DNA of 64,000 nucleotides from Saccostrea cucullata (Eukaryota): contig NW_026935947.1 of assembly GCF_032062105.1 (NCBI RefSeq), forward strand, positions 310,001 through 374,000, written 5' to 3'. Position numbers and translations under genes: made by a program. How positions within the stretch are numbered: the stretch's first letter is position 1; every line of letters begins with the position of its first letter. Below are positions 3,072-59,880 of this stretch, piece by piece. The notes under the pieces were generated by a model. That model was not told the DNA's origin. It searched no databases and saw only the letters and a list, made by a program, of their open reading frames with translations.

Positions 3072-6000
3072 CTACGTGTTTTCTGATGTTTTTGCGTCGT
3101 GTTCGAAGTGTTTGTAGATGGAGGTCACGTAAGCCATAACGGCCTGCCAGTCAGGACGCTCCATGGCTACCATGTCTCCAATGTTCTGTAAAAGAGTCAA
3201 TATGAAAGAAAACGTACACAAATGTATTTATCATAAATATCCACCACAGATGATACCAAGTCACCTTTTAATGTTTTATCATATTTAATAATCAAAGTTT
3301 CACAATTGATTGTTCAGAATCATACAGATTTATTTCAGCATTACAGTGTTATATCAGATGCAGAGCTGTATCATGTGTTAATGTTATGATATTGTGAGTT
3401 TCATCTAAGATACCCGAGCCTCATTAAAACTTTTTACAACATACCAATATAGATGAGGAGATACCAACTCCCTCTGCAGCCTCAAAGGCAAGGGTAAAGT
3501 TCCTTCTCTGGAAAGTAAATAAATATATACAGTACTATATTTATATGATTTTAGAATTCCAGTTCTCCAAAATAAATTTTGAAGAGAAACTGTAATCAAG
3601 CTCTGGAAACTGAACAACTCCTAGTTATGACCTTGTTTAACTTTTACACTTTTTTCACCTACAATCACTGAAACTGACCTTGATCTTTCAGAAAAGAAAA
3701 CCTTGAGTCAAAAATTTTAAAGTGAAGTACATATAAACCTAACATGTTCATCTATTAGAAGGTTATGCATCAGACACAAGTTTAAACATTTTCATTTTTC
3801 ACTCCAGACTCAAGCAAGGACTGAATCCTTATCTAGATTAAATATTTCAGTGGAGATACAGTTTACAAAAAATGTCAATAAGTTTAAATACCTTGTCCTC
3901 AGTGTTCAGCTCTGCAAATGGAATTTTGTCTGGCAGGTAGCTGTGGAGAAGTGCACAAAAAGCCAGACCGTCATTCCAGCTGCTACTAAAGTTGGTAATG
4001 TCTACATTCTGTCACAAAAAAAAGAGGAAAATTATGAAAATTATCATATAATTAAGCTTCAATGAACCTTATATTTATTGTGAGGGCATATTACTATAAA
4101 ACAAAAAACTTCTGCAATTTCCTGCACTTCTAAACTTACACTGTATTTGACAGTCTTCTGCTGACACCACTTCAGCAGGGCATTGCGTTTAGATCCGCCC
4201 ATCTGTTTTGCTAAGACAGCCAAAGGATCCTTTGTGCCTGAATCCTTTCTCTCAGGTTCCATACTGGGAAAAAGGAAATTAGAAAATGTTAAACAAGATT
4301 CAATAACATTTTTTTTTCTTACTGAACAAATGCTGAACAAAACATTTATGGAAATAACAAAGAAACAAGGATATATTTGTTTGCACATTGCTAGGTTCCA
4401 ATACATGTATTAGGATTTCAAATGATTTGCAAGTACTAAATCAAAATGCTATTCTCATCATCAGATTTTTAAAAATCTGAATGAAAAATGTTATTAATCA
4501 GAAGAAAAAAAATTGAGAATACAAATTCTATACTTTATTAAAAAGACAGTCATTTTACATTTTTAACCCCCTACCTTACACCACTGCTCCTCCTTTGTGA
4601 ATTCCTGGACAATATGGAGGTCAGGGAAGGAGAAGAATCATTCTTAACAACAGGGGGTGCAGATTTCGGGGAGGAATCTATCGGAGATCGGGGCGGGTCA
4701 AAACTCAGAGACCCCACTGAATGTCTGAGGGGTGAGGGTTTCTCCACCTGTTTCCTCAGCACTGACCGCAGGGCCACCTCGGGGGAAGCTGAGGAGGAAA
4801 ACACGGATGGATTTTCGGAGATGGGGGAACTTGGGGATTTCACAATGTTATGCAGACAGGGGATGCCCTGCACAGTTTCATCCATGGAACAGTCAGAATT
4901 TCTCCTGGAATTGCATGTACTGGAATGAATTGAGGAGCAACCACTTTTAACTTGTTCCTCTATGGAGCGTATTAAGGATTTCACTGATTGGCTTTGTGTC
5001 TTAGGGTCAGTGCGTTTGTCTCTCAAGTTAGCTAACTCCCTTCCTACTGAATTTAACATCTTGCCCTTGAGTTCTGCAGAGGATAATATGGATTTCGGAG
5101 TTCCGTCTGTACTTCTGTGGAGTTTCAGCCTGTCAACTTCTTCCAGTAACTTTTTGTTTTCGTCCGTCAGCACGCGACATTTTTCTCTGTATGTAGAATT
5201 TTCCTGCTGAACCTTTTCCATGTCTTCCTGTGTTTCTGCTCTGAAGTTATTCGCCACTAGAACTGCCACCTGCAAATACAGTTCAAGTTAAGATAAAATC
5301 AAATCAATCACACTCAACCTCACAATTCTTATTGTAAAACTTTGCACACATATTATTGCCCTACCCTACCTCTTGGAAGAGGGGAAACTGCCAGTTAACC
5401 TTTGAAGCCAATTAAAAGTTCCAAAAGATAATTTAAAAGATTTACAAGCTTTTTCAACTAATGGTAAAAGCATTATCTGTTCTTCATTATCACATACAAA
5501 ATCTCCTCACCTGTAGATCTCTCTGGAACTGCGTCCACTCCTCTGACTCTTCAGTATGACGACTCTTCAGCTCCATGATCTCCACCTCCAGCGTGGCCTT
5601 CTCCTGCTGTAGGGAGTGATTCTTCTCCTTAGCCTCGCTCAACTGAGTCAGTAACTCGTTCTTCTCCTCCTTATATTTATTGCAGTCGTGCTTGAGCTGC
5701 TCTATGTGCTCACGTATATTGCTGAGCTCTGACGAGCTGTCCGTTTTGCCTTTCTCTAGTTTTTCCAGCTGGTACTTCAGATCCTGGATTTCAGTCTTGG
5801 CATTGTTCTTGCACACTTTCAGTTCCTCTTCCTTGGCAGTGAGCGATTCCTTCCCTCTACCCAGCTCACACTGAGCATGCTGGAGGCTCTCCTTCATGTC
5901 TGCTAACTTGCTCTCCAACTTGTCTTTCTCCTGCCTTGTGTTGTGAAGAAGTTCCTCCAATTCAGAATGACTGTCTGCTGCTTTGCAATATTGCTCCAAT

Positions 6001-7604
6001 TCCTGCACTTTTGATTTTTCATTTTCTAACAAGGTTTTCAAATGGTCCATTTCGATTTTTTCATTGTCAATGGTTTTCTTTTGATCAGATATAGTTTTCT
6101 CACAGATTTCTTTCTCCGACTTTAGCGAGTTCAATTTATCTTCCATTAATTGCAACTTGTCTTTATTTGTATCGCACAACTCACCCAACTCCCTACACTC
6201 GTTCTCCCTAGCATTCAAAATGTTCACAAGCTCTGTCTGCTTACATAAGAATTCCTCTCGTTCATCCTGAGCACCCTTTAACAGTTCCAGCAATTGTTGC
6301 TCCCTTTCTGATCGCTCCGGAAAATTCCCACTGATAAGAAGAGATTTCAACTGTTCAATCTGTACTCGACAGTGTTCCAATTTTTCGGTTTGAGTACACA
6401 AGGATTCTAAAAGCACATACTTTTGGTCAAGAAGTTTTTCATTTTCTGCATTCAGTTCATTAACACTTTGCTGAAGATCTCCCAGCTCCTGCAAGGTTGC
6501 CTGTAGTTCCTCGTTTGTACTGTAATGAGTCTCTTCCATCTGCAGAATGCGCTCTGTTAGACATGCTACGGAAATCTCACTTAGAGCGTCACTGCTCTTG
6601 TTGCTTCCCTTTTCCCATTGGCTGTTTTCCAGAGAGAACTCCTGGTCCGCCAGGGACAGAATGGGTTCGGAGGCTGCCGTGGAAGCCGGTCTGTCGGTCC
6701 CCTCCCCCTTACAACTGATGGATCGCCCCCCTCGGGCTTCATCTGTGTCCAGACTATCACAGCTCTTACTTTTTGGAAAGCTACTTTCACTCGATTCCAT
6801 GTTTTTCTTGGCATTCTTTTCTTGTAAAATGGACAGTTTTTCAGTGTCTGTGATTTGTTCCACTGGATAACCTAATTCTTGTAACTGTTCCCGCAGAAGT
6901 ATATTCTCTTTCCTTAGGAATTCAAGTTCATCTTTGATATCATGTGTCGGTATTTGCTCCTTCAGACGTTTGGTTTCATACCTGTATTTCTCTATTTCAG
7001 CTTTCCTATTTTCTGCAACTTGTATCAATTCTGAAATTCGCGATTCTTTTTCTTTCTTGTCTTTCTCAAAGTTAGCCAATAATTCGGCATTGTAAGCCAT
7101 GACGTCTGCAGGAGCAGACGTTCTTTTTCTAGAAGACTTATCCTTACTCACATTGTGAGAACTATGTGCCCGTTTCATGGCCGAACTTTTCGCACTTGTG
7201 CTTCTTGGCGTCAATGCCCCTGTCTTGTCCAACTGTTGCGTGCTGGAAGCTTTCCGAATTGTTGACATCCCTCCAGATTTCACTGGTTTTGGTTTCAGGA
7301 AAACATTGTCTTTTCCTTTCGTCACCAAGTTTTCCTTATTGCTTGAGCCTCCCTTTGTAATTCCTAAACTAGACTTGGGCCGATGTGGAGGATCAGCTAG
7401 GGTGGCCAACTTCTTTTTCTGATGACTGGACAGATTTTCATGGCTTTTGCTCAGGTAAGTCTTTCCCAAAGGTGAAGCCGCAGGTTTAGGCACCAGCGTT
7501 CCTTTCTGATGGGAACTGAGACTGGAATTTTCCGACTTCGACTCCTTCATGTGGAAGGCCGTCACCGCCTTGATGGGTGTGGAGGTCCGTTCCTGCCTCT
7601 TCAT
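3072..7604 (-). CDS. SPECC1L: Cytospin-A / SPECC1-like coiled-coil protein with C-terminal calponin-homology domain (about 1068 aa, spliced)
   Basis: Exons with GT-AG borders and consistent phase: 7604(ATG; acceptor at 7651)-5511, 5269-4575, 4263-4140, 4008-3892, 3507-3445, 3185-3072. Family motifs: [119 protein letters not shown]. The start codon is inferred. Confidence 0.92.
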
Positions 7605-8863
7605 CTTCTCATGGTAGAAAACGTATCCCTGGGCCTCATCCACCGAGTTTCCTACAGACACAAAATGTTGACAGTTATAAATCACAACATGGTCGCACTC
7701 CATCATGTTTATAATCCTTAGAAACACTAAGGAAAACCTCAACAATCTTTCAAATATATACAAGTACCAGCACGGGCGAGATTATCCCCACTTAAACAAA
7801 TGCTTCACAAATTCAGAAAAACGTAAGTCCATCATAATTTGAAATTATTACTCAGAAATTCAGCATGCGCTTCACATAATATCCCTTGTTCTAGCGAGTA
7901 CATTTAACACCGAGAGTCAGTGTGGGTTGTAATGTGTTATATCTTCCAACATGAACAAAGTACTTGTTATAATATAGTACATATATAAACCTTGTGACTC
8001 AGCAGCTAGCCACCACAAAACCTTGCATATATCCGTACACAAGTTTAAGAACTTCATACAAACAGAAACAAACTGCTACAGTACTACAATAAATCAGTCA
8101 TGTGAGCTGTGTATTCAACTATTTGAACTTTATTTATAAAAACTTCCCTAAAATGATAATGTTGGCAAATACGAGAGTCCCATTGATTGCACTTCACAAT
8201 AATTTATGACATTTTTTCTGAAAATTAGTTTTATGATATATGTACTACATGTAAATCAATTAAACCTGCAGTGCTATTTAAATTATGTACGTATGATCAT
8301 GGTGATATTAAGTGTTGTTTAAATCTCGTAAAAACTTTCTTCCCTTTTGAAACACAGGTAGCCGAAAACAAACTTATTTCACCTGTTATCATTTTCTCCT
8401 TAAATTATAATTCTACATTTTACTAGCAGTTACTGACACTGCCTATTTTAAAATATACTGTAACTGATCTTTATCCTTTTTCATATTGAATATTCACTCT
8501 GAATTTCCCTTTATTCTCAAACCGAGCCCTTTCTTCCTGTGTCATAGTCCACAAAGTTAAAATAGGAAGTATTTCAACTAACAAAAGCTTTCATATTAAC
8601 CCTTAATTACCTTTATACACCTAGTGATTAAAACAAATATACATAAATTTTTGAAAAGCATGCTATCTTTTTATGCTATTTACTACATTAAATTTCAGCC
8701 TCATGTTGAAATTTAGTTGCATTTTTCTTGCATGTCAATCAGGATTTAACCAACTCATAAATGTCATAAAACCCGATCTGCTATACACAGATGAAGTTTT
8801 TTCTACTTCAAGATTAGACTGTCAATTTATTTTGCCTTATTATATTTACCCAGCATGATATCA

Positions 8864-9068
8864 TGTTGTGAATTATAAACATAAGTGCTTTTCTTATTTA
8901 CCTTTGTCAATATAATCATGTTTATGTAAGTGACTTTTGCCGAACTATGACGTCACAGTACTATGACGTCATAGACGTTACTATAACGTTATGTTATATA
9001 CTTGTTGAGTTTCAAATAAACCACTATACGGTTCAGATGTGTTTTCTGTGAGTGCTACAATCTTGACA
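8864..9068 (+). repeat. 5' LTR
   Basis: Direct repeat of 11485-11689; two TGACGTCA sites, TATA-like TTATATA, AATAAA at 9015-9020. Confidence 0.95.
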
Positions 9069-9069
9069 T

Positions 9070-9087
9070 TGGTGCCGTGACCAGGAT
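9070..9087 (+). promoter_or_regulatory. Primer-binding site complementary to the tRNA-His 3' end
   Basis: TGGTGCCGTGACCAGGAT is the reverse complement of ATCCTGGTCACGGCACCA, the recalled invertebrate tRNA-His 3' end plus CCA; it lies 1 nt after the 5' LTR. Confidence 0.85.
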
Positions 9088-9095
9088 GAGGAGAG

Positions 9096-11225
9096 ATGAC
9101 TTCTAAGCTGAAGGCAGTAAGAGCAGGACAGAGAAGTGCTGTAACCAGACTTCTAAAAAGACTGGATGAAGAAAATGAAGATGCAGAGGAAATTGAGGCA
9201 ATTTTGGAGACATTAAGGGACAAACAGGAAATTCTTAGAGATCTGGATGAGAAAATTCTAACAGAAACAGCAGAGGAGGATATTGAGAGAGAAATACTTG
9301 ATTCAGATGAGTATAATTTCAATCTTAATTCTAAAATGAGAAAATTTAAGAAACATCTGATAGTTCATCGTTCAAATTTGAATCCATCAGCCAACATTTA
9401 TTCAAACCAGAATGACAATTCACAAATTGAAGAAAACAGTCAATCAAGAAACAATTTGAGTGAAAATTCAAGAACTCCTCAGTCCCTTACAAGCTTTCAT
9501 TCAAATCCAAACAGTGGTAACTTTCACAAACTACCAAAATTAAACTTACCCATTTTTGAGGGAAATGTGTTGGAGTGGCAGTCATTCTGGGATTCGTTCG
9601 ATTCGGCTATTCATAGCAACAACACGTTGACAGAAGTTCAAAAGTTTAATTACTTAAAGTCTTTAGTAGCAGACGAGGCATCGAATACCATTTCAGGATT
9701 TGCACTCACACATGCAAACTACAACAGAGCAATTGAGCTTCTACATGAAAGGTTTGGGCAAAAACATAAGATAACTCAGTCTTACATGCAAGCACTCTTG
9801 GACCTACCCACTCCCAAGAATAATCTCACAAGCCTGCGTCATTTTCATGACCAAGTGGAGACATATGTCAGAGGTTTAGAATCCTACGGACAAGCTGAAG
9901 ATACATATGGTTCGCTTCTAGTACCTGTGATTCTTAACAAATTACCTTGTGAATTACGCAAAAATTTGGCACGCGAGCATGGATCTACCGACTGGTTACT
10001 AGGTGACTTGAGAAAGGCTCTATACAAGGAACTTGACATACTAGAAGCAGGAACTCATATGGACACAACAGAAGACCGTGTTACAGCTATTTTCTACATG
10101 CACTCAGAATCCAGTGATGAGCAATCACAACGGAACTACAGTCCTCGGAATCATCGAGTATGTTGTGCATTTTGCAGGGAGTCACATCATACAAGTAGCT
10201 GTACAAGATACACAAAACACAATGACCGGATGAAAATTGTCAGACGAGACAAACTGTGCTTTAATTGTTTAGGGAGACATCGTGTTACAGACTGTCAATC
10301 CAAATCCAATTGCAAAATCTGCAAAAAACGTCATCACACAAGTTTGTGCACTGCTCATAATGCAGTCAAAACCAATACGAGGAATACCCATGGATCACAA
10401 GCAAAGGCTGAACTGGATGCAAAGACCAGGGAAATCAAGAATCTACAGGATGAAATCAAGAACTATAAAAGTGTCATTGCTACATTAGAACAGCAGATAA
10501 CAGCACAGAGGATTTTGACTGAGAAAACCATGAAGGATGTAAACATTTTACATACCCAGTTTGCAAAGCTTCAGGCCAAATTTCATGCACAGTCAATTGC
10601 TACAAAGCAAATGACAAATGAGAATCAAGCTGAAGAGTTGAAGAAAAAAGAAGTTGAAGTTAATACGCTCACACAGGGGATACAACGACTCAAATCATCA
10701 AGAGAGACACCTGGTAGGAAACTTCAGCAAGTGGGCGGAAATATTCATTCAGATGTACAACAGCAGAGAGAAACTCCAAGAGATCAAATTACTGGTTTGA
10801 AGATGGAATCAGAGATATCCAAGAAACTAGATAACGTTCATAAGAATAACCTAGAACAGAGGTACAGAGAGGAGACCCAGGAAAAGATAAACATCATCAA
10901 CCAACTGGAAAAGGAACGAATCCGCTACACCAAAGAGGCCAGCAATCCAACTCAGAATTACGCAGACTATAACAAAGTTCATGGCATGCAGATTGTTGAC
11001 TTCAAGAGGATTTCCAAGGATGACACCAATATCAGGCAACAGGAGAAAACATTCAAAACTTTCAGAGATGTCGAGAGGACATACAGTCAGAACCTCATCG
11101 ACTCACGGGATGAGATCGCAGAGATGAAGAGGAAGGTGAAGATTATGGATCATCATATTGATCAGCATAAGGAGCAAATTCAAGCCAAAGAGAATGCATT
11201 CATCAAGGAGTACTTCGGACATTAG
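9096..11225 (+). CDS. BEL/Pao Gag (DUF1759-type core, three Cys/His knuckles) fused to a CFAP58-like coiled-coil fragment, 709 aa
   Basis: KLPKLNLPIFEGNVLEWQSFWDSFDSAIH...QKFNYLKS Gag core; knuckles CAFCRESHHTSSC, CFNCLGRHRVTDC, CKICKKRHHTSLC (10164-10349); aa ~436-709 resemble CFAP58/CCDC147 (QLEKERIRYTKEAS, YSQNLIDSRDEIAEMKRKVKIMDHHIDQHKEQIQAKE). Confidence 0.88.
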   Translation: MTSKLKAVRAGQRSAVTRLLKRLDEENEDAEEIEAILETLRDKQEILRDLDEKILTETAEEDIEREILDSDEYNFNLNSKMRKFKKHLIVHRSNLNPSANIYSNQNDNSQIEENSQSRNNLSENSRTPQSLTSFHSNPNSGNFHKLPKLNLPIFEGNVLEWQSFWDSFDSAIHSNNTLTEVQKFNYLKSLVADEASNTISGFALTHANYNRAIELLHERFGQKHKITQSYMQALLDLPTPKNNLTSLRHFHDQVETYVRGLESYGQAEDTYGSLLVPVILNKLPCELRKNLAREHGSTDWLLGDLRKALYKELDILEAGTHMDTTEDRVTAIFYMHSESSDEQSQRNYSPRNHRVCCAFCRESHHTSSCTRYTKHNDRMKIVRRDKLCFNCLGRHRVTDCQSKSNCKICKKRHHTSLCTAHNAVKTNTRNTHGSQAKAELDAKTREIKNLQDEIKNYKSVIATLEQQITAQRILTEKTMKDVNILHTQFAKLQAKFHAQSIATKQMTNENQAEELKKKEVEVNTLTQGIQRLKSSRETPGRKLQQVGGNIHSDVQQQRETPRDQITGLKMESEISKKLDNVHKNNLEQRYREETQEKINIINQLEKERIRYTKEASNPTQNYADYNKVHGMQIVDFKRISKDDTNIRQQEKTFKTFRDVERTYSQNLIDSRDEIAEMKRKVKIMDHHIDQHKEQIQAKENAFIKEYFGH

Positions 11226-11484
11226 AGTAAAGAGAAAGACGATTTCTTGTGAGACTTTGTTCATATACGTGATGGTACCAAACTCAAAGACATAGAGGAA
11301 ATCCAAACTTAAATCTAACGGAGGAGCGTTACATTTCAAGTGACATTGCGAGTAACTTTTCGAGGATTTTTATTCATCTTTCATTCAAATTTCCTTTTAT
11401 TTCTTGGTCCAAGGACTTACTCAATTCGTACTTTGGTGGGCCGGAGAATGTTGTGAAATATGGACACTTTGGTGGGCCGGAGAA

Positions 11485-11689
11485 TGTTGTGAATTATAGA
11501 CATAAGTGCTTTTCTTATTTACCTTTGTCAATATAATCATGTTTATGTAAGTGACTTTTGCCGAACTATGACGTCACAGTACTATGACGTCATAGACGTT
11601 ACTATAACGTTATGTTATATACTTGTTGAGTTTCAAATAAACCACTATACGGTTCAGATGTGTTTTCTGTGAGTGCTACAATCTTGACA
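11485..11689 (+). repeat. 3' LTR
   Basis: Direct repeat of 8864-9068, followed by the TSD TATCA. Confidence 0.95.
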
Positions 11690-51700: not shown

Positions 51701-54700
51701 TAGGGCTTATTATAACTTGGGAATGGACTTACTCCTCAAACTTTAACTGGGACACTGATGCTAAGGCTGACACCCATGCTAGGGGTATTGCATAAGCTCA
51801 TTCTGACTTTGTTGAGGTGAGCTATTCTTGAAAGGGGCATTAAACAAAAAAAAAGTTTTCTATGATAAAAATTACATTTCATTGTTGTAAATAAGTCCCA
51901 TTCCAGACTATTGGTGAAATTATTCTATACTGGAAATTAATCACCTTGTACTGTCTGAGGGGTTGTTTCCTGCCAGCAGAGATAATATGGTGGATTTTCC
52001 AGAACCCTGAAGTCCAAGAACTCCTACCACAAAGAAATCTGTTTGATCCAGTAAAACCTATAACAGAGATACAACAGAGTTACCAATTTACCAGTGAAGT
52101 AAAACATACAACAGAGTGAGATAAATCTTCAAAAGAGAGATTAAACCTACAACAGAGTGAGATAAAACTTACAACAGATTGAAATAAAACCTACAACAGA
52201 GTGAAGTAAAACCTATAAAAGAGTGAGATAAACCTACAACAGATTGAAATAAAACCTATAGACCTTAAATAGAGTGGGATAAAACCTACAACAGAGATAA
52301 AATCTATAACAGAGTGAGTTAAACCTACAATAGATTGAAATAAAACTTAAACAGAGTAAGATAAAATCTAACACAGAGTGAGGTAAATCCTAAAGTGAGA
52401 TAAAACCTACAAAAGAGTGAGATAAAATCTACAACTGAGTTAGATAAAACCTACAAAGGAGTGAAGTAAATTCTACAACAGAGTGAGATAAAACCTACAA
52501 CAGAGTGAAATAAAACAACAGAGATAAAACCTACAACAGAGTTAGATAAAACTTACAACAGAGTTAGATAAAACTTACAACAGAGTGAGGTAAATTCTAC
52601 AACAGAGTGAGAAAAAACCTACAATAGAGTGAGATAAAACCTACAACAGAGTGAGATAAAACCTACAACTGAGTTAGATAAAACCTGCAACAGTTCGATA
52701 AAACCTACAACAGAGTTAGATAAAACCTACAACATACAACAGAGTTAGATAAATCCTACAACAGAGGGAAGTAAATTCTACAACAGAGTGACATAAACCT
52801 ACAACAGAGTGAGATAAAACCTACAACAGAGTGAAGTAAATTCTACAACAGAGTGAGATAAAACCTACAACAGAGTGAGATAAAACCTACAACAGAGTGA
52901 AGTAAAAACTACAACAGATTAGATAAAACTTAGAAAAGAGTGAAGTAAATTCTACAACAAAGTGAGGTTAAATCTACAACTGAGTTTGATAAAACCTACA
53001 AAAGAGTGAAGTAAATTCTACAACAGAGTGAGATAAAACCTACAACAGAGTGAGATAAAACCTACAACAGAGTGAAATAAAGCTTACTACAGAGTGAGAT
53101 AAAACCTACAACAGAGTGAAATAAAGCTTACTACAGAGTGAGATAAAACCTACAACAGAGTGAGATAAAGCTTACTACAGAGTGAGATAAAACCTACAAT
53201 AGAGTTAGATAAAACCTACAACAGAGTGACGTAAAATCTACAACTGAGTTAGATAAAATGATGTCCAAGAACTCCTACCACAAAGAAATCTGTTTGATCC
53301 AGTAAAACCTATAACAGAGATACAACAGAGTTACCAATTTACCAGTGAAGTAAAACATACAACAGAGTGAGATAAATCTTCAAAAGATGAGATTAAACCT
53401 ACAACAGAGTGAGATAAAACTTACAACAGATTGAAATAAAACCTACAACAGAGTGAAGTAAAACCTATAAAAGAGTGAGATAAACCTACAACAGATTGAA
53501 ATAAAACCTATAGACCTTAAATAGAGTGGGATAAAACCTACAACAGAGATAAAATCTATAACAGAGTGAGTTAAACCTACAATAGATTGAAATAAAACTT
53601 AAACAGAGTAAGATAAAATCTAACACAGAGTGAGGTAAATCCTAAAGTGAGATAAAACCTACAAAAGAGTGAGATAAAATCTACAACTGAGTTAGATAAA
53701 ACCTACAAAGGAGTGAAGTAAATTCTACAACAGAGTGAGATAAAACCTACAACAGAGTGAAATAAAACAACAGAGATAAAACCTACAACAGAGTTAGATA
53801 AAACTTACAACAGAGTTAGATAAAACCTACAACAGAGTGAGGTAAATTCTACAACAGAGTGAGAAAAAACCTACAATAGAGTGAGATAAAACCTACAACA
53901 GAGTGAGATAAATCCTACAACTGAGTTAGATAAAACCTGCAACAGTTCGATAAAACCTACAACAGAGTTAGATAAAACCTACAACATACAACAGAGTTAG
54001 ATAAATCCTACAACAGAGGGGAGTAAATTCTACAACAGAGTGACATAAACCTACAACAGAGTGAGATAAAACCTACAACAGAGTGAAGTAAATTCTACAA
54101 CAGAGTGAGATAAAACCTACAACAGAGTGAGATAAAACCTACAACAGAGTGAAGTAAAAACTACAACAGAGTTAGATAAAACTTAGAAAAGAGTGAAGTA
54201 AATTCTACAACAAAGTGAGGTTAAATCTACAACTGAGTTTGATAAAACCTACAAAAGAGTGAAGTAAATTCTACAACAGAGTGAGATAAAACCTACAACA
54301 GAGTGAGATAAAACCTACAACAGAGTGAAATAAAGCTTACTACAGAGTGAGATAAAACCTACAACAGAGTGAAATAAAGCTTACTACAGAGTGAGATAAA
54401 ACCTACAACAGAGTGAGATAAAGCTTACTACAGAGTGAGATAAAACCTACATTAGAGTTAGATAAAACCTACAACAGAGTGACGTAAAATCTACAACTGA
54501 GTTAGATAAAACCTACAAAAGAGTGAAGTAAATTCTACAACAGAGTGAGATAAAACCTACAACAGAGTGAGATAAAACCTACAACAGAGTGAAATAAAGC
54601 TTACTACAGAGTGAGATAAAACCTACAACAGAGTGAAATAAAGCTTACTACAGAGTGAGATAAAACCTACAACAGAGTGAAATAAAGCTTACTACAGAGT

Positions 54701-57359
54701 GAGATAAAACCTAAAACAGAGTGAGATAAAACCTTAAACAGAGTGAGATAAAACCTACAATAGAGTGAGATAAAACCTACAACAGATTGAGGTAAAATCT
54801 ACAACTGAGTTAGATAAAACCTACAACTGAGTTAGAAAAAACCTACAACTGAGTTAGATAAAACCTACAACAGAGTTAGATAAAACCTACAAAAGAGTGA
54901 AGTAAATTCTACAAGAGTGAGATAAAACCTACAATAGAGTGAGATGAAACCTACAACAGAGTTAGATAAAACCTACAACAGAGTGAGATAAAACCTACAA
55001 CAGAGATAGGTAAAATCTACAACTGAGTTAGATAAAACCTACAAAAGAGTGAAGTAAATTCTACAAGAGTGAGATAAAACCTACAACAGAGTGAGGTGAA
55101 ATCTACAACTGAGATAAAACCTACAAAAGAGTGAAGTAAAATCTACAATAGAGTGAGATAAAACCTACAATAGAGTGAGGTAAAATCTACAACAGACTGA
55201 GATAAAACCTACATCAAACTGAGATAAAACTTACAACTCAATCAAGTAAGACCTACAAAAGAATGAACTAAAACCTACATCAGAACAAAATAAAACCTAC
55301 AACAGAAAGAAGATAAACCTACAATAGATTGAAATAAAACCTACACCAGAATAAAGTAAAACCTACAACAGAATGGACTAAAGCCTACAACAACAGAATG
55401 AAGTGAATCCTACAACAAAATAAAGTAAAATCTGAAACAAAATAACATAAAATCCCCAGCAGAGTAAAGTAAAACCTTCTTGCACAACTCACTTAAGATA
55501 GACACTTAACATCACTGATAAATTTTATGGCCTGAAAATCTCCATCATTTGGTAATATATTGGCACATATCATGTGATCAAAATAAATCTTGTTAAGATT
55601 GAGATATTGACAAAAAGATTCTAACTTCCATTCCTGCGTCGCTCCATTGATGACAGTCGTCTACAATCCTTATGCTTTGGTTCATTTCAAGGGGAGCAGA
55701 GAGTCGACTGGATCCTACAATAATATAAGTACACAGTTAAAGTTAATTTGAAGGAAGCTCTAAATATTAACAAAAAGTGGTTGAAAAGTTGAAAACATCA
55801 CAGACTGAAGTCCTTAATAATACTATTTACAATGTATATCAGTAATTTCTCTTTTAAATCAACTGCAAAGGCTAAGGGTCCTAGGTTTGTGAACCAATCT
55901 CCATGTCCTTTACAAAAATTACTTTGTAAAAAGAGATGTTTGTAAAACACTTATGCCCCCCTCCCCAAAATAATTAGATTTTTTTAAGTCCAAGGGGTAT
56001 ACTGTAAAATCACATATTTTCGTGGGGTCAAATTTTCGTGGTTTGAGGAAAAAATGTTGGTTCGTGGGGATTTGATTTCGTGGATGAAGAACTTTTTAGT
56101 AGTTGTGCATATGCAAATTTACATTTCGTGGTGGACATAAATTCGTGGGTATCTTCATACCACGAAAACTAAACCCTCACGAAAATTAGTGATTTCACAG
56201 TAACTTTCTCAGAAAGGGCTCGATCGTACCCAAATCAGAACTTGACCTCGATATTCATTTGATAAAATATGTATACTAAATTTCATTTTAGTATGTACAA
56301 TGGTTGTGAAGAAAATGAACAGAAATTTATGATTTCTAAGGTGCATTTATATTAGTTGAAGTGATTAAGGAAAACACTATTCTATGGTATATGTTCATAT
56401 TAAAAGAATTGACACAAAAACATTCGACAGATTTTACCATCCGTCTGGACGATTCCTGCAGGAATTCGGTGCGAGGCTGAGGGGATCTGAGATGGAGTAG
56501 TTTCCCCTGATGGTACAGAAGCTGAGCTTGATGGGAATGTCTCATCTCTTGGTCTTATCGCCATGACAACAGGCTTGTCTGGCTTGTTTGTAGACGAAGT
56601 TGAAGATGGGCTCGTACTAAGAGTGCTTCCACCCTTAAAAAATGCATTAAAATCAGGTAAACTGAACATTCTAAGTGTAGAAGTAACTTTTTTAAATTGG
56701 TATTAAAATTGGTTAATAAACAGAGACATAAATAGCAGTGATGTTCAGATGTTCAGAACTTCAGGATAATAAATATACTGGTATGTTGCTGATCCTATTG
56801 CATTGTACATGCATTTTTGAATTCATGCACTATATGTTCTTGCAAGAATATCTACAAAAGTTTAAACAAAAATAAACTTGCTTTGATTTAATTGAAATAT
56901 TACAGATAAAAACGTTCTTCATTTAAAGTCGGCACATTTCAGGCTTCATGCAGTTAATGCAACTAACACAATGTCATGTGACGTCAGAGTCTAGACACAC
57001 CATATATGTCATGTGCGGTTTGACGTGCCTGATCAAAATTAAAGTTGAATAAGTATCTGGGCTATCCCTAACGGTTGCTCTTTCAACATATTATGTGAAT
57101 TGCCATAAAAAATATTCAAACCGAGTCCAGAGCAGCAGGTTTGGCCAAAATGATAGTTGGCTTTGATGACTGGTAATCTCCATCATATGCCTCCCTTTCA
57201 ATCTGAAATAGAACACATAAATCTTAACTTTATAGCAGGGTTCATTAATTTTATGTCTTGTGATAAGTGATTATTAACCTTTCTATTGCCACTGTTTGGA
57301 CCACCGCCCCTTCTCCTGGGTCTCCTTCTACCTCGATCTCCTCTTTCTGGGTCAGACAT
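45737..57359 (-). CDS. SMG9: Nonsense-mediated mRNA decay factor SMG9 (spliced; penultimate exon looks corrupted in this sequence)
   Basis: Exons 57359-57279, 57202-57122, 56633-56438, 55714-55626, 52057-51945, 51477-51366, 51158-51063, 50816-50731, 50470-50370, 48613-48506, 48422-48312, [~47700-47579 damaged], 45815-45737. Motifs: LLDQTDFFVVGVLGLQGSGKSTILSLLAGN (P-loop), IFLDSQPIMSPSVLD, SVCHIILVVQDWFTDINLIRFLQTAEMLKP, WFHYAARTFEAVKKSQLMAEYNRLL. Confidence 0.93.
45877..47117 (+). mobile_element. Degenerate HINE-like element with internal tandem repeats
   Basis: GAGGCCCAAGGGCCTT 5' motif; recurring CAGATCCAGCATC...CAAGTTTGGT units. Confidence 0.5.
48086..48301. mobile_element. Tc1/mariner-type MITE, 10 bp from an SMG9 splice donor
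   Basis: TIR CTGTAAACCAACTTTTATTCGCG / CGCGAATAAAAGTTGGTTTACAG, TA flanks. Confidence 0.85.
48765..50212 (+). mobile_element. HINE-like element with degenerate tandem units
   Basis: AACAAGAGGCCCACAGGCC start, repeated CATTTTCACTAT...CACCAGAAC units, CTCAGGTGACCTAAAA end. Confidence 0.55.
52050..55480. repeat. 22-bp minisatellite (GAGTGAGATAAAACCTACAACA)n in an SMG9 intron
   Basis: About 3.4 kb of tandem units, including a 1251-bp-offset block duplication. Confidence 0.95.
56002..56200. mobile_element. Tc1/mariner-type MITE
   Basis: CTGTAAAATCAC...GTGATTTCACAG termini, TA flanks, internal TTCGTGG motifs. Confidence 0.75.
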
Positions 57360-59087: not shown

Positions 59088-59880
59088 CTAAGCACTGATG
59101 TTGCTAGCAGATGCATTTGAAGCTTCTCTCTCCGATTCTAACCATAAAGATTCAACTTCCGAATCAGTATCAGTGTTGCAATCATCTGAGGCGTACTCTG
59201 CGGTGTCATCAGACGAAAAGGAGAGATCTTTAGTCACTTTCTCCTCTACATTACCTATGCCTACAAGTTGAATTTCATTTGAGAAAATCATTCCCTCCGA
59301 AACACTTTTCTCGATTGCATTCTTCTCCACACTGCCAATGTCTACAGATTCAATTTCATTGAAGAAAATTCTTCCCTCTGAAACACTTTCGATCACATTC
59401 TTTCCCACGCAGTCAATTTCTATAGATACAATTTCATCGAAGAAAACCGTACCCTCTGAAACAAGGGCCCGGACATTTTCAGGGGCACCAATGGCATCAA
59501 ATGGCGATGCAATGGATACATTATCAGATATGAAATTTTGTACTTTCTGAACCATTGTGTCCTGTAATTAATAAATTGATAATTTAAAAACGTTACAAAG
59601 ACAACTCTTAAATTTCTTTTAAGAGCGATGGTAACACTTTAGATATCGAGAAAATAAATGAATTTGTAACTACGTAAAGTTTTCCGTAATTAATGTGAGG
59701 TTTTTCTGTTTGGATCAGGCCGTTATATACATGTATAACTATTCCCTTTAATTAAAGTTACAAAAATTCAGTATACACGCATAATATCCTAAAATATTGA
59801 TAAAAACTTACCTTCACAACACTCTTCTTTCTGTAGAAAACTACAACAATTATTTGCAGGACAATCCAACCGACAACAAC
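59088..59880 (-). CDS. 3' exons of an uncharacterised putative single-pass membrane protein with three acidic 26-27 aa repeats
   Basis: Exon 59880-59812 (VVVGWIVLQIIVVVFYRKKSVVK) splices in phase 0 to 59561-59088 (VSEGxxFxxEI repeats, acidic tail); upstream exons not found. Confidence 0.55.

Follow-up and report, generated by a model that had tools for sequence, protein, structure and literature searches.

A BEL/Pao-type retrotransposon of Saccostrea oysters with a Gag–CFAP58 fusion in place of pol, very probably derived from a spliced host mRNA

The window analysed here is a stretch of 64,000 nucleotides from the oyster Saccostrea cucullata (RefSeq assembly GCF_032062105.1, contig NW_026935947.1, positions 310,001 to 374,000 of the forward strand). 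It contains a long terminal repeat (LTR) element whose single intact open reading frame (ORF) joins a Gag protein in frame to a segment of the ciliary coiled-coil protein CFAP58. Our analysis indicates that this element is very probably a helper-dependent BEL/Pao LTR retrotransposon of Saccostrea in which the pol region has been replaced by part of a spliced CFAP58 mRNA.

Anatomy of the element and identity of its coding region

The element and its parts are as follows (positions in the window):

8864–11689, + strand: LTR element of BEL/Pao type, 2826 bp, defined by its LTR pair, target-site duplication (TSD), primer-binding site (PBS) and polypurine tract (PPT)
8859–8863, +: left TSD, TATCA; the same 5-mer stands at 11690–11694
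8864–9068, +: 5′ LTR, 205 bp, TG...CA ends; one mismatch to the 3′ LTR
9070–9086, +: PBS, first bases TGG, one base past the 5′ LTR; read directly from the sequence
9096–11225, +: single intact ORF, 709 aa, Gag–CFAP58 fusion; from ORF and Pfam analysis
9096–10397, +: Gag part, with N-terminal helices, DUF1759 (nt 9555–9968) and three CCHC knuckles
10398–10407, +: 5′ capture junction, 10-nt microhomology CAAGCAAAGG, common to the parent-like locus L008 and a host CFAP58 exon
10398–11240, +: CFAP58-derived intronless segment, host aa ~226–552; coding to 11225, with one 37-aa internal deletion
11241–11466, +: 3′ non-coding internal region, 90–92% conserved in other copies
11467–11484, +: PPT-like purine-rich stretch adjoining the 3′ LTR
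11485–11689, +: 3′ LTR, 205 bp; one mismatch to the 5′ LTR
11690–11694, +: right TSD, TATCA, copy of the left 5-mer

The C-terminal 274 aa of the window's own protein (aa 436–709; nt 10401–11222), used as the query, match the Pfam family CFAP58_CC at 75–77 bits (cut-off 27; E=6e-21) and the solved CFAP58 chains 9fqr_It (E=6e-33), 8j07_j1 (E=2e-28) and 8glv_LP (E=1.5e-21). The match is colinear, query residues 3–160 falling on 230–388 of the solved chains and 142–271 on 408–544. A preliminary description of this DNA, made from the letters alone, had proposed CFAP58 as the specific and colinear relative of this segment, and both points are borne out. Oyster CFAP58 proteins, which the first protein search missed, were reached via gastropod CFAP58 and a cluster listing. 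The identity of the fragment to true CFAP58 falls in taxonomic order: 51% for Saccostrea, 49.5–49.8% for Crassostrea and Ostrea, 47% for Pinctada, 45% for scallop and 42% for gastropod. The host CFAP58 (CCDC147) of S. cucullata is XP_062578364.1 (P0176); the 51% counts gaps, and on aligned residues alone the identity is ~59%. True CFAP58 is itself highly conserved (gastropod and cnidarian proteins are ~75% identical in the captured region); the host gene is multi-exon and strongly constrained and encodes ~870 aa, of which ~37%, from the central coiled coil, is represented in the element.

Upstream of this segment, the fusion ORF matches DUF1759 (PF03564) at aa 154–291 (Pfam, E=2e-41), followed by three CX2CX3HX4C knuckles at aa 357–418 (nt 10164–10202, 10257–10295 and 10311–10349). 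An exhaustive search recovered 24141 Gag relatives at E≤0.001; these carry downstream a DUF1758 protease, reverse transcriptase (RT), Peptidase_A17 and integrase, a layout characteristic of BEL/Pao that upholds the assignment made beforehand. The window element shares with this group TG...CA direct LTRs, a short TSD, a DUF1759 and CCHC Gag, a PBS and a PPT, and Pfam finds in it none of the Pol domains (DUF1758 protease, RT, Peptidase_A17, integrase). As relatives with a like Gag have these domains, the element is a non-autonomous derivative and not a complete BEL/Pao member; with pol missing, it would depend on Pol supplied in trans. The intact 709-aa ORF, the missing Pol domains and the CFAP58-specific C-terminus thus agree with the in-frame, pol-less fusion first described.

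The two LTRs differ at 1 of 205 positions, and the stop codon ends 259 bp short of the 3′ LTR start (11485); near-identical LTRs and a distance of about 260 bp had been noted. The 5′ LTR contains two TGACGTCA motifs (8948–8955 and 8964–8971) and an AATAAA (9015–9020). Since no tRNA genes were found within the window, no primer tRNA for the PBS is assignable from it. Neither a second copy of the element nor a solo LTR lies elsewhere within the window, and an exact-sequence look-up of the 709-aa ORF returned no identical entry. The region 11241–11466 has no significant match to Pol C-termini, the host gene or the host 3′ untranslated region (best match 19 nt, E=0.098). Positions 11431–11466 are a 36-nt tandem duplicate of the PPT and the first 3′ LTR bases, just upstream of the real PPT/LTR boundary, and may have arisen by slippage or by aberrant plus-strand priming.

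Probable capture of a spliced CFAP58 transcript

The annotated CFAP58 proteins of Ostrea edulis (L001) and S. cucullata (L007) were mapped onto their own genes and gave identical exon maps; the fragment was then compared with the host gene one exon at a time in nucleotides or, with these maps, one codon at a time. It corresponds to seven consecutive host exons and crosses six intron positions, at which the gene has introns of 106–300 bp. Window positions 10398–11240 match each of the seven S. cucullata exons at 74–79% nucleotide identity; these matches follow one another without a break in the window but are separated in the host gene, and both capture end points lie inside host exons. The captured template was most likely a spliced host CFAP58 mRNA, as the preliminary description had supposed. 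That description had also noted an in-frame deletion of about 40 aa, which measures 37 aa against the host protein. Exon skipping was considered as the source of this deletion and rejected, as its edges are not at exon boundaries.

It could be argued that the likeness to CFAP58 is that of any coiled coil, or that the chimera is an artefact of assembly. Spurious coiled-coil matches do exist, and an exon of the neighbouring cytospin-A-like gene weakly matches TPR_MLP1_2 and BRE1. Against such a generic likeness, the structural matches reach E=6e-33 and are to CFAP58 chains only, the nucleotide identity holds exon by exon, and the protein identities follow taxonomy; against an artefact, the same chimera is found on five other contigs in two assemblies. 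We regard this explanation as refuted.

S. cucullata also has a parent-like element (L008). Its LTR, leader and Gag are 86% identical to nucleotides 1–1485 of the window element (up to window position 10348), and past Gag it has an aspartic protease in place of CFAP58; it is truncated and has no 3′ LTR. The 10-nt string at 10398–10407 is exact in the CFAP58 gene of S. echinata; S. cucullata CFAP58 and L008 each differ from it at one position. The chimera tracks the parent upstream of the string and the host downstream of it. At this 5′ junction the microhomology, together with the switch from parent to host, is what template switching guided by microsimilarity would be expected to leave; the mechanism proposed beforehand fits it, and the coordinates given then proved accurate. 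L008 was also considered as an intact helper and rejected, as it lacks a 3′ LTR and has ORFs for neither RT nor integrase. Upstream of this parent-like element, positions 430–2190 of L008 are a tandem array with a period of ~165 nt.

In the mechanism we propose, RT copying a parental element would have switched onto a co-packaged CFAP58 mRNA at the 10-nt microhomology past the Gag knuckles, and a second switch would have returned it to the element upstream of the PPT. The outcome would be an in-frame Gag–coiled-coil ORF between intact LTRs, copied later by Pol supplied in trans, presumably from related autonomous BEL/Pao elements. The chimera has kept LTRs, PBS, PPT and Gag, which has let it be copied repeatedly since capture.

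Copies, age and possible role

Copies were located via annotated proteins. Five further ones lie on five other contigs of the two assemblies, four in S. cucullata (90–92% identical to the window element) and one in S. echinata (80%):

Window copy, S. cucullata: 709-aa ORF intact; LTR pair 99.5% identical; TSD TATCA
L002, S. cucullata: 706-aa ORF intact; 5′ LTR truncated
L003, S. cucullata: two stops and frameshifting indels in Gag, fragment open; LTRs 92.9%; TSD CTTGT
L004, S. cucullata: one internal deletion in Gag, one frameshift in the fragment; LTRs 93.9%; TSD AAAGA
L006, S. cucullata: large deletion of most of Gag and the first third of the fragment, rest open; LTRs 99.0%; TSD ~ACCC
L005, S. 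echinata: one stop and one frameshift in N-terminal Gag, fragment open; LTRs 96.9% (partial alignment)

Indel counts from blastn are in part compensating alignment gaps, and the ORF of L002 is in fact intact. All copies have the 5′ junction and the 37-aa deletion in common; with TSDs that differ and LTR pairs at 92.9–99.5%, this indicates one old capture followed by repeated transposition. A still-mobile family with an old capture had been predicted, and both parts stand: the chimera is common to two Saccostrea species, its dS to the host gene is 0.7–1.3, and the insertion in the window is recent. The S. echinata copy resembles the host more closely (60% identity) and has ~105 nt more host sequence at its 3′ end; the S. 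cucullata copies have lost this 3′ part of the host-derived segment and are still mobile. In NCBI annotation, which the present analysis corrects, the copies go by "uncharacterized protein", "protein hook homolog" or "CFAP58-like", and the internally deleted one (L006, 52650–54197) forms the terminal exon of the 1085-aa "titin-like" model P0004; this model is probably an annotation chimera, though it may alternatively reflect exonisation.

Substitution rates were estimated by the Nei–Gojobori method on 272 shared codons:

Host genes, S. cucullata vs. S. echinata: dS 0.42, dN 0.003, dN/dS 0.01
Host genes, Saccostrea vs. Crassostrea: dS ~1.2, dN 0.011–0.012, dN/dS 0.01
Fragment (S. cucullata copies) vs. 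Saccostrea hosts: dS 0.73–1.27, dN 0.25–0.27, dN/dS 0.21–0.34
Fragment (four copies) vs. Crassostrea and Ostrea: dS 1.4–2.7, dN 0.19–0.28, dN/dS 0.08–0.19
S. cucullata copies vs. the S. echinata copy: dS 0.38–0.46, dN 0.19–0.20, dN/dS 0.41–0.51

Host CFAP58 is near invariant among oysters (dN 0.003–0.015). The fragment has Saccostrea-specific nucleotide states at 13–17 of 24 informative sites, vs. ~10% for states specific to other oysters, which places the capture within the Saccostrea lineage, once it had separated from that of Crassostrea and Ostrea. The capture dates from about the time at which the element lineages of the two Saccostrea species diverged, or from earlier. Within Saccostrea, the fragment (10401–11222, compared with L007 and L009) shares 4–7 of 16 synonymous states specific to S. 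echinata but only 1–3 of the 14 specific to S. cucullata, and dS to the S. echinata gene (0.73–0.89) is below that to the S. cucullata gene (0.95–1.27). These figures hint at a source mRNA closer to the S. echinata lineage, even though the copies concerned reside in S. cucullata; per-copy Fisher p values are 0.002–0.25.

Among copies, dN/dS is 0.18–0.30 for Gag and 0.41–0.52 for the fragment, with bootstrap upper bounds of 0.62–0.97 for the latter; a value of ~0.45 is below 1, in keeping with the old capture "kept open" of the preliminary description. For the internal branch between the S. cucullata copies and the S. echinata copy, dN/dS is 0.44–0.51 (confidence interval 0.27–0.78), and the terminal branches give noisy values, often spanning 1, as expected for decay after insertion. 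Given that the segment has 274 aa only, is intronless and evolves at a dN/dS of 0.41–0.52 vs. 0.01 for the host, it is a derived fragment of CFAP58 and not an orthologue.

What keeps the fragment open is a separate question. On our reading its axonemal function has been lost, and we tentatively suggest that moderate constraint maintains the fragment as a generic helical module of Gag, for dimerisation or as a spacer. Positions that were L, I, V, M or F keep the hydrophobic class at 79–91%, and conservation in the fragment is not clearly higher at hydrophobic than at charged positions. An AlphaFold2 model of the fusion (pTM 0.31) predicts the segment as helical, and such a helical extension of Gag would probably self-associate. 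Retroviral Gag assembly can be driven by heterologous zippers (papers listed in PMC8949992).

Several observations weigh against the account given so far, in either its history or its proposed role. No intact autonomous partner was found, L008 being truncated; the 3′ junction has no parental 3′ end with which to be compared; the census comprises only those copies that NCBI annotated as proteins; the full ORF is intact in just two of the six copies; and no fusion transcript appears among the protein matches. As for the role, the modelled segment is split into four helices (433–470, 476–535, 562–625 and 643–708) by low-confidence breaks, three prolines occupy formerly hydrophobic positions where the host region has none, and the S. 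cucullata stem has a dN/dS of ~0.7 with a wide interval that includes 1.

The main rival to retention as a helical module is that the fragment is passive cargo: the ORF would stay open only because translation as far as a late stop codon protects the RNA or allows efficient expression of Gag, or because master copies active in recent times happen to be intact, and the amino acids themselves would have no role. This, too, is possible, and we hold it with the same tentativeness. The prolines at core positions and the S. cucullata branch agree with it, as do a constraint ~40-fold weaker than that on host CFAP58 (~0.45 vs. 0.01) and the continued mobility of S. cucullata copies that have lost host-derived 3′ sequence. 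However, selection against stops alone would leave dN/dS unlowered, whereas the pairwise and internal-branch values are below 1 with bootstrap bounds under 1, and the hydrophobic class has largely been kept.

The preliminary description had speculated that the coiled coil targets Gag particles to flagella or basal bodies. In this case the fragment would dock particles on axonemal or centriolar partners of CFAP58, such as CCDC146, in sperm or ciliated cells. On doublet microtubules CFAP58/FAP58 forms a dimeric coiled-coil filament, and a heterodimer with MBO2/CCDC146 has been proposed (PMC11151096); the central coiled coil is the very part captured. However, the fragment has a dN of 0.25–0.27 where host genes have 0.003–0.015, and it has suffered the 37-aa deletion and three prolines; the partner-binding surfaces of CFAP58 are therefore unlikely to be preserved. 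The relaxed constraint and the prolines weaken this speculation, and from the sequence comparison we consider such docking unlikely.

A dominant-negative role also deserves consideration, in which a Gag–coiled-coil protein would poison the assembly of related autonomous BEL/Pao elements, to the benefit of the host or as control of its own copy number. Restriction factors made of truncated Gag provide the analogy, and the element has a conserved Gag (dN/dS 0.2–0.3) that is 78–86% related to a parent-like element in the same genome. However, a multi-copy, LTR-flanked family with fresh TSDs at different loci has the pattern of a propagating parasite and not of a fixed single-locus host gene, and no orthologous fixed locus was seen; a dominant-negative role would be improbable.

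On a bolder reading, the coiled coil could be an adaptive part of a long-lived helper-dependent BEL/Pao lineage, multimerising Gag or pairing with host CFAP58/CCDC146 in germ or ciliated cells and giving an edge over the autonomous parent, in a family that has perhaps moved between Saccostrea lineages. This is a doubtful conjecture, and its element of movement between lineages draws on the sharing of synonymous states skewed to S. echinata.

Genomic surroundings and relation to known systems

Elsewhere in the window, the complete coding exons of a host cytospin-A-like (SPECC1-type) gene lie at 3075–7604 on the − strand, 100% identical to the S. cucullata protein P0337. The element stands on the other strand, 1.26 kb upstream of the start codon of this gene, and its LTR could therefore influence the cytospin-A-like promoter region. 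A 3.3-kb minisatellite at 52093–55392 (22-nt unit, ~151 copies, 75% matches) accounts for the strong AT skew at 52–56 kb. Two further ORFs, 20851–21336 (−, 161 aa) and 59088–59555 (−, 155 aa), have no Pfam match.

Replication-defective transducing retroviruses acquire spliced host mRNA by template switching, express Gag–onc fusions, have lost pol and need a helper. Their capture mechanism is cited in PMC5131818. The oyster element differs from them in that its captured gene encodes a structural ciliary coiled coil with no growth-promoting sign, and in that it is an endogenous retrotransposon without env. Measured against host CFAP58 itself, the fragment is colinear with host aa 226–552 and still scores above the CFAP58_CC threshold.

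LTR-mediated retroposition is known in animals, with Pao/BEL elements among the carriers (Tan et al. 2016, Genome Res, PMC5131818). Those cases and the oyster element have much in common: a partial, intronless copy of a host mRNA replaces internal ORF sequence of an LTR element, both LTRs are kept and secondary retroposition follows; microsimilarity at the switch points has a median of 6 bp there vs. 10 nt at the oyster 5′ junction. The published cases are young and mostly polymorphic retrocopies, whereas the oyster element is an in-frame Gag fusion in a multi-copy family with dN/dS below 1, about as old as the split of the two Saccostrea species (host dS 0.42).

The maize element Bs1 (Jin and Bennetzen 1994; Elrouby and Bureau 2001, 2010; reviewed in PMC13317346) offers a further parallel. 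Bs1 is likewise non-autonomous, has no pol and carries transduced host fragments in a hybrid ORF; it is a plant element of another superfamily with fragments of three host genes, whereas the oyster element is an animal BEL/Pao element with one.

Mechanism and architecture are thus already known, and what is new is the present family, for which, as for CFAP58 in any retroelement, we found no report in the literature. The family is notable for its completeness and persistence. Its record of capture is unusually complete, as the source gene, a parent-like element, the microhomology at the crossover, the deletion and the later insertions can all be read. A Gag–host fusion can persist and spread over a time like that of the divergence of two species (host dS ~0.4), and such persistence bears on the shuffling of host exons by retroelements and on the competition of non-autonomous elements with their helpers.

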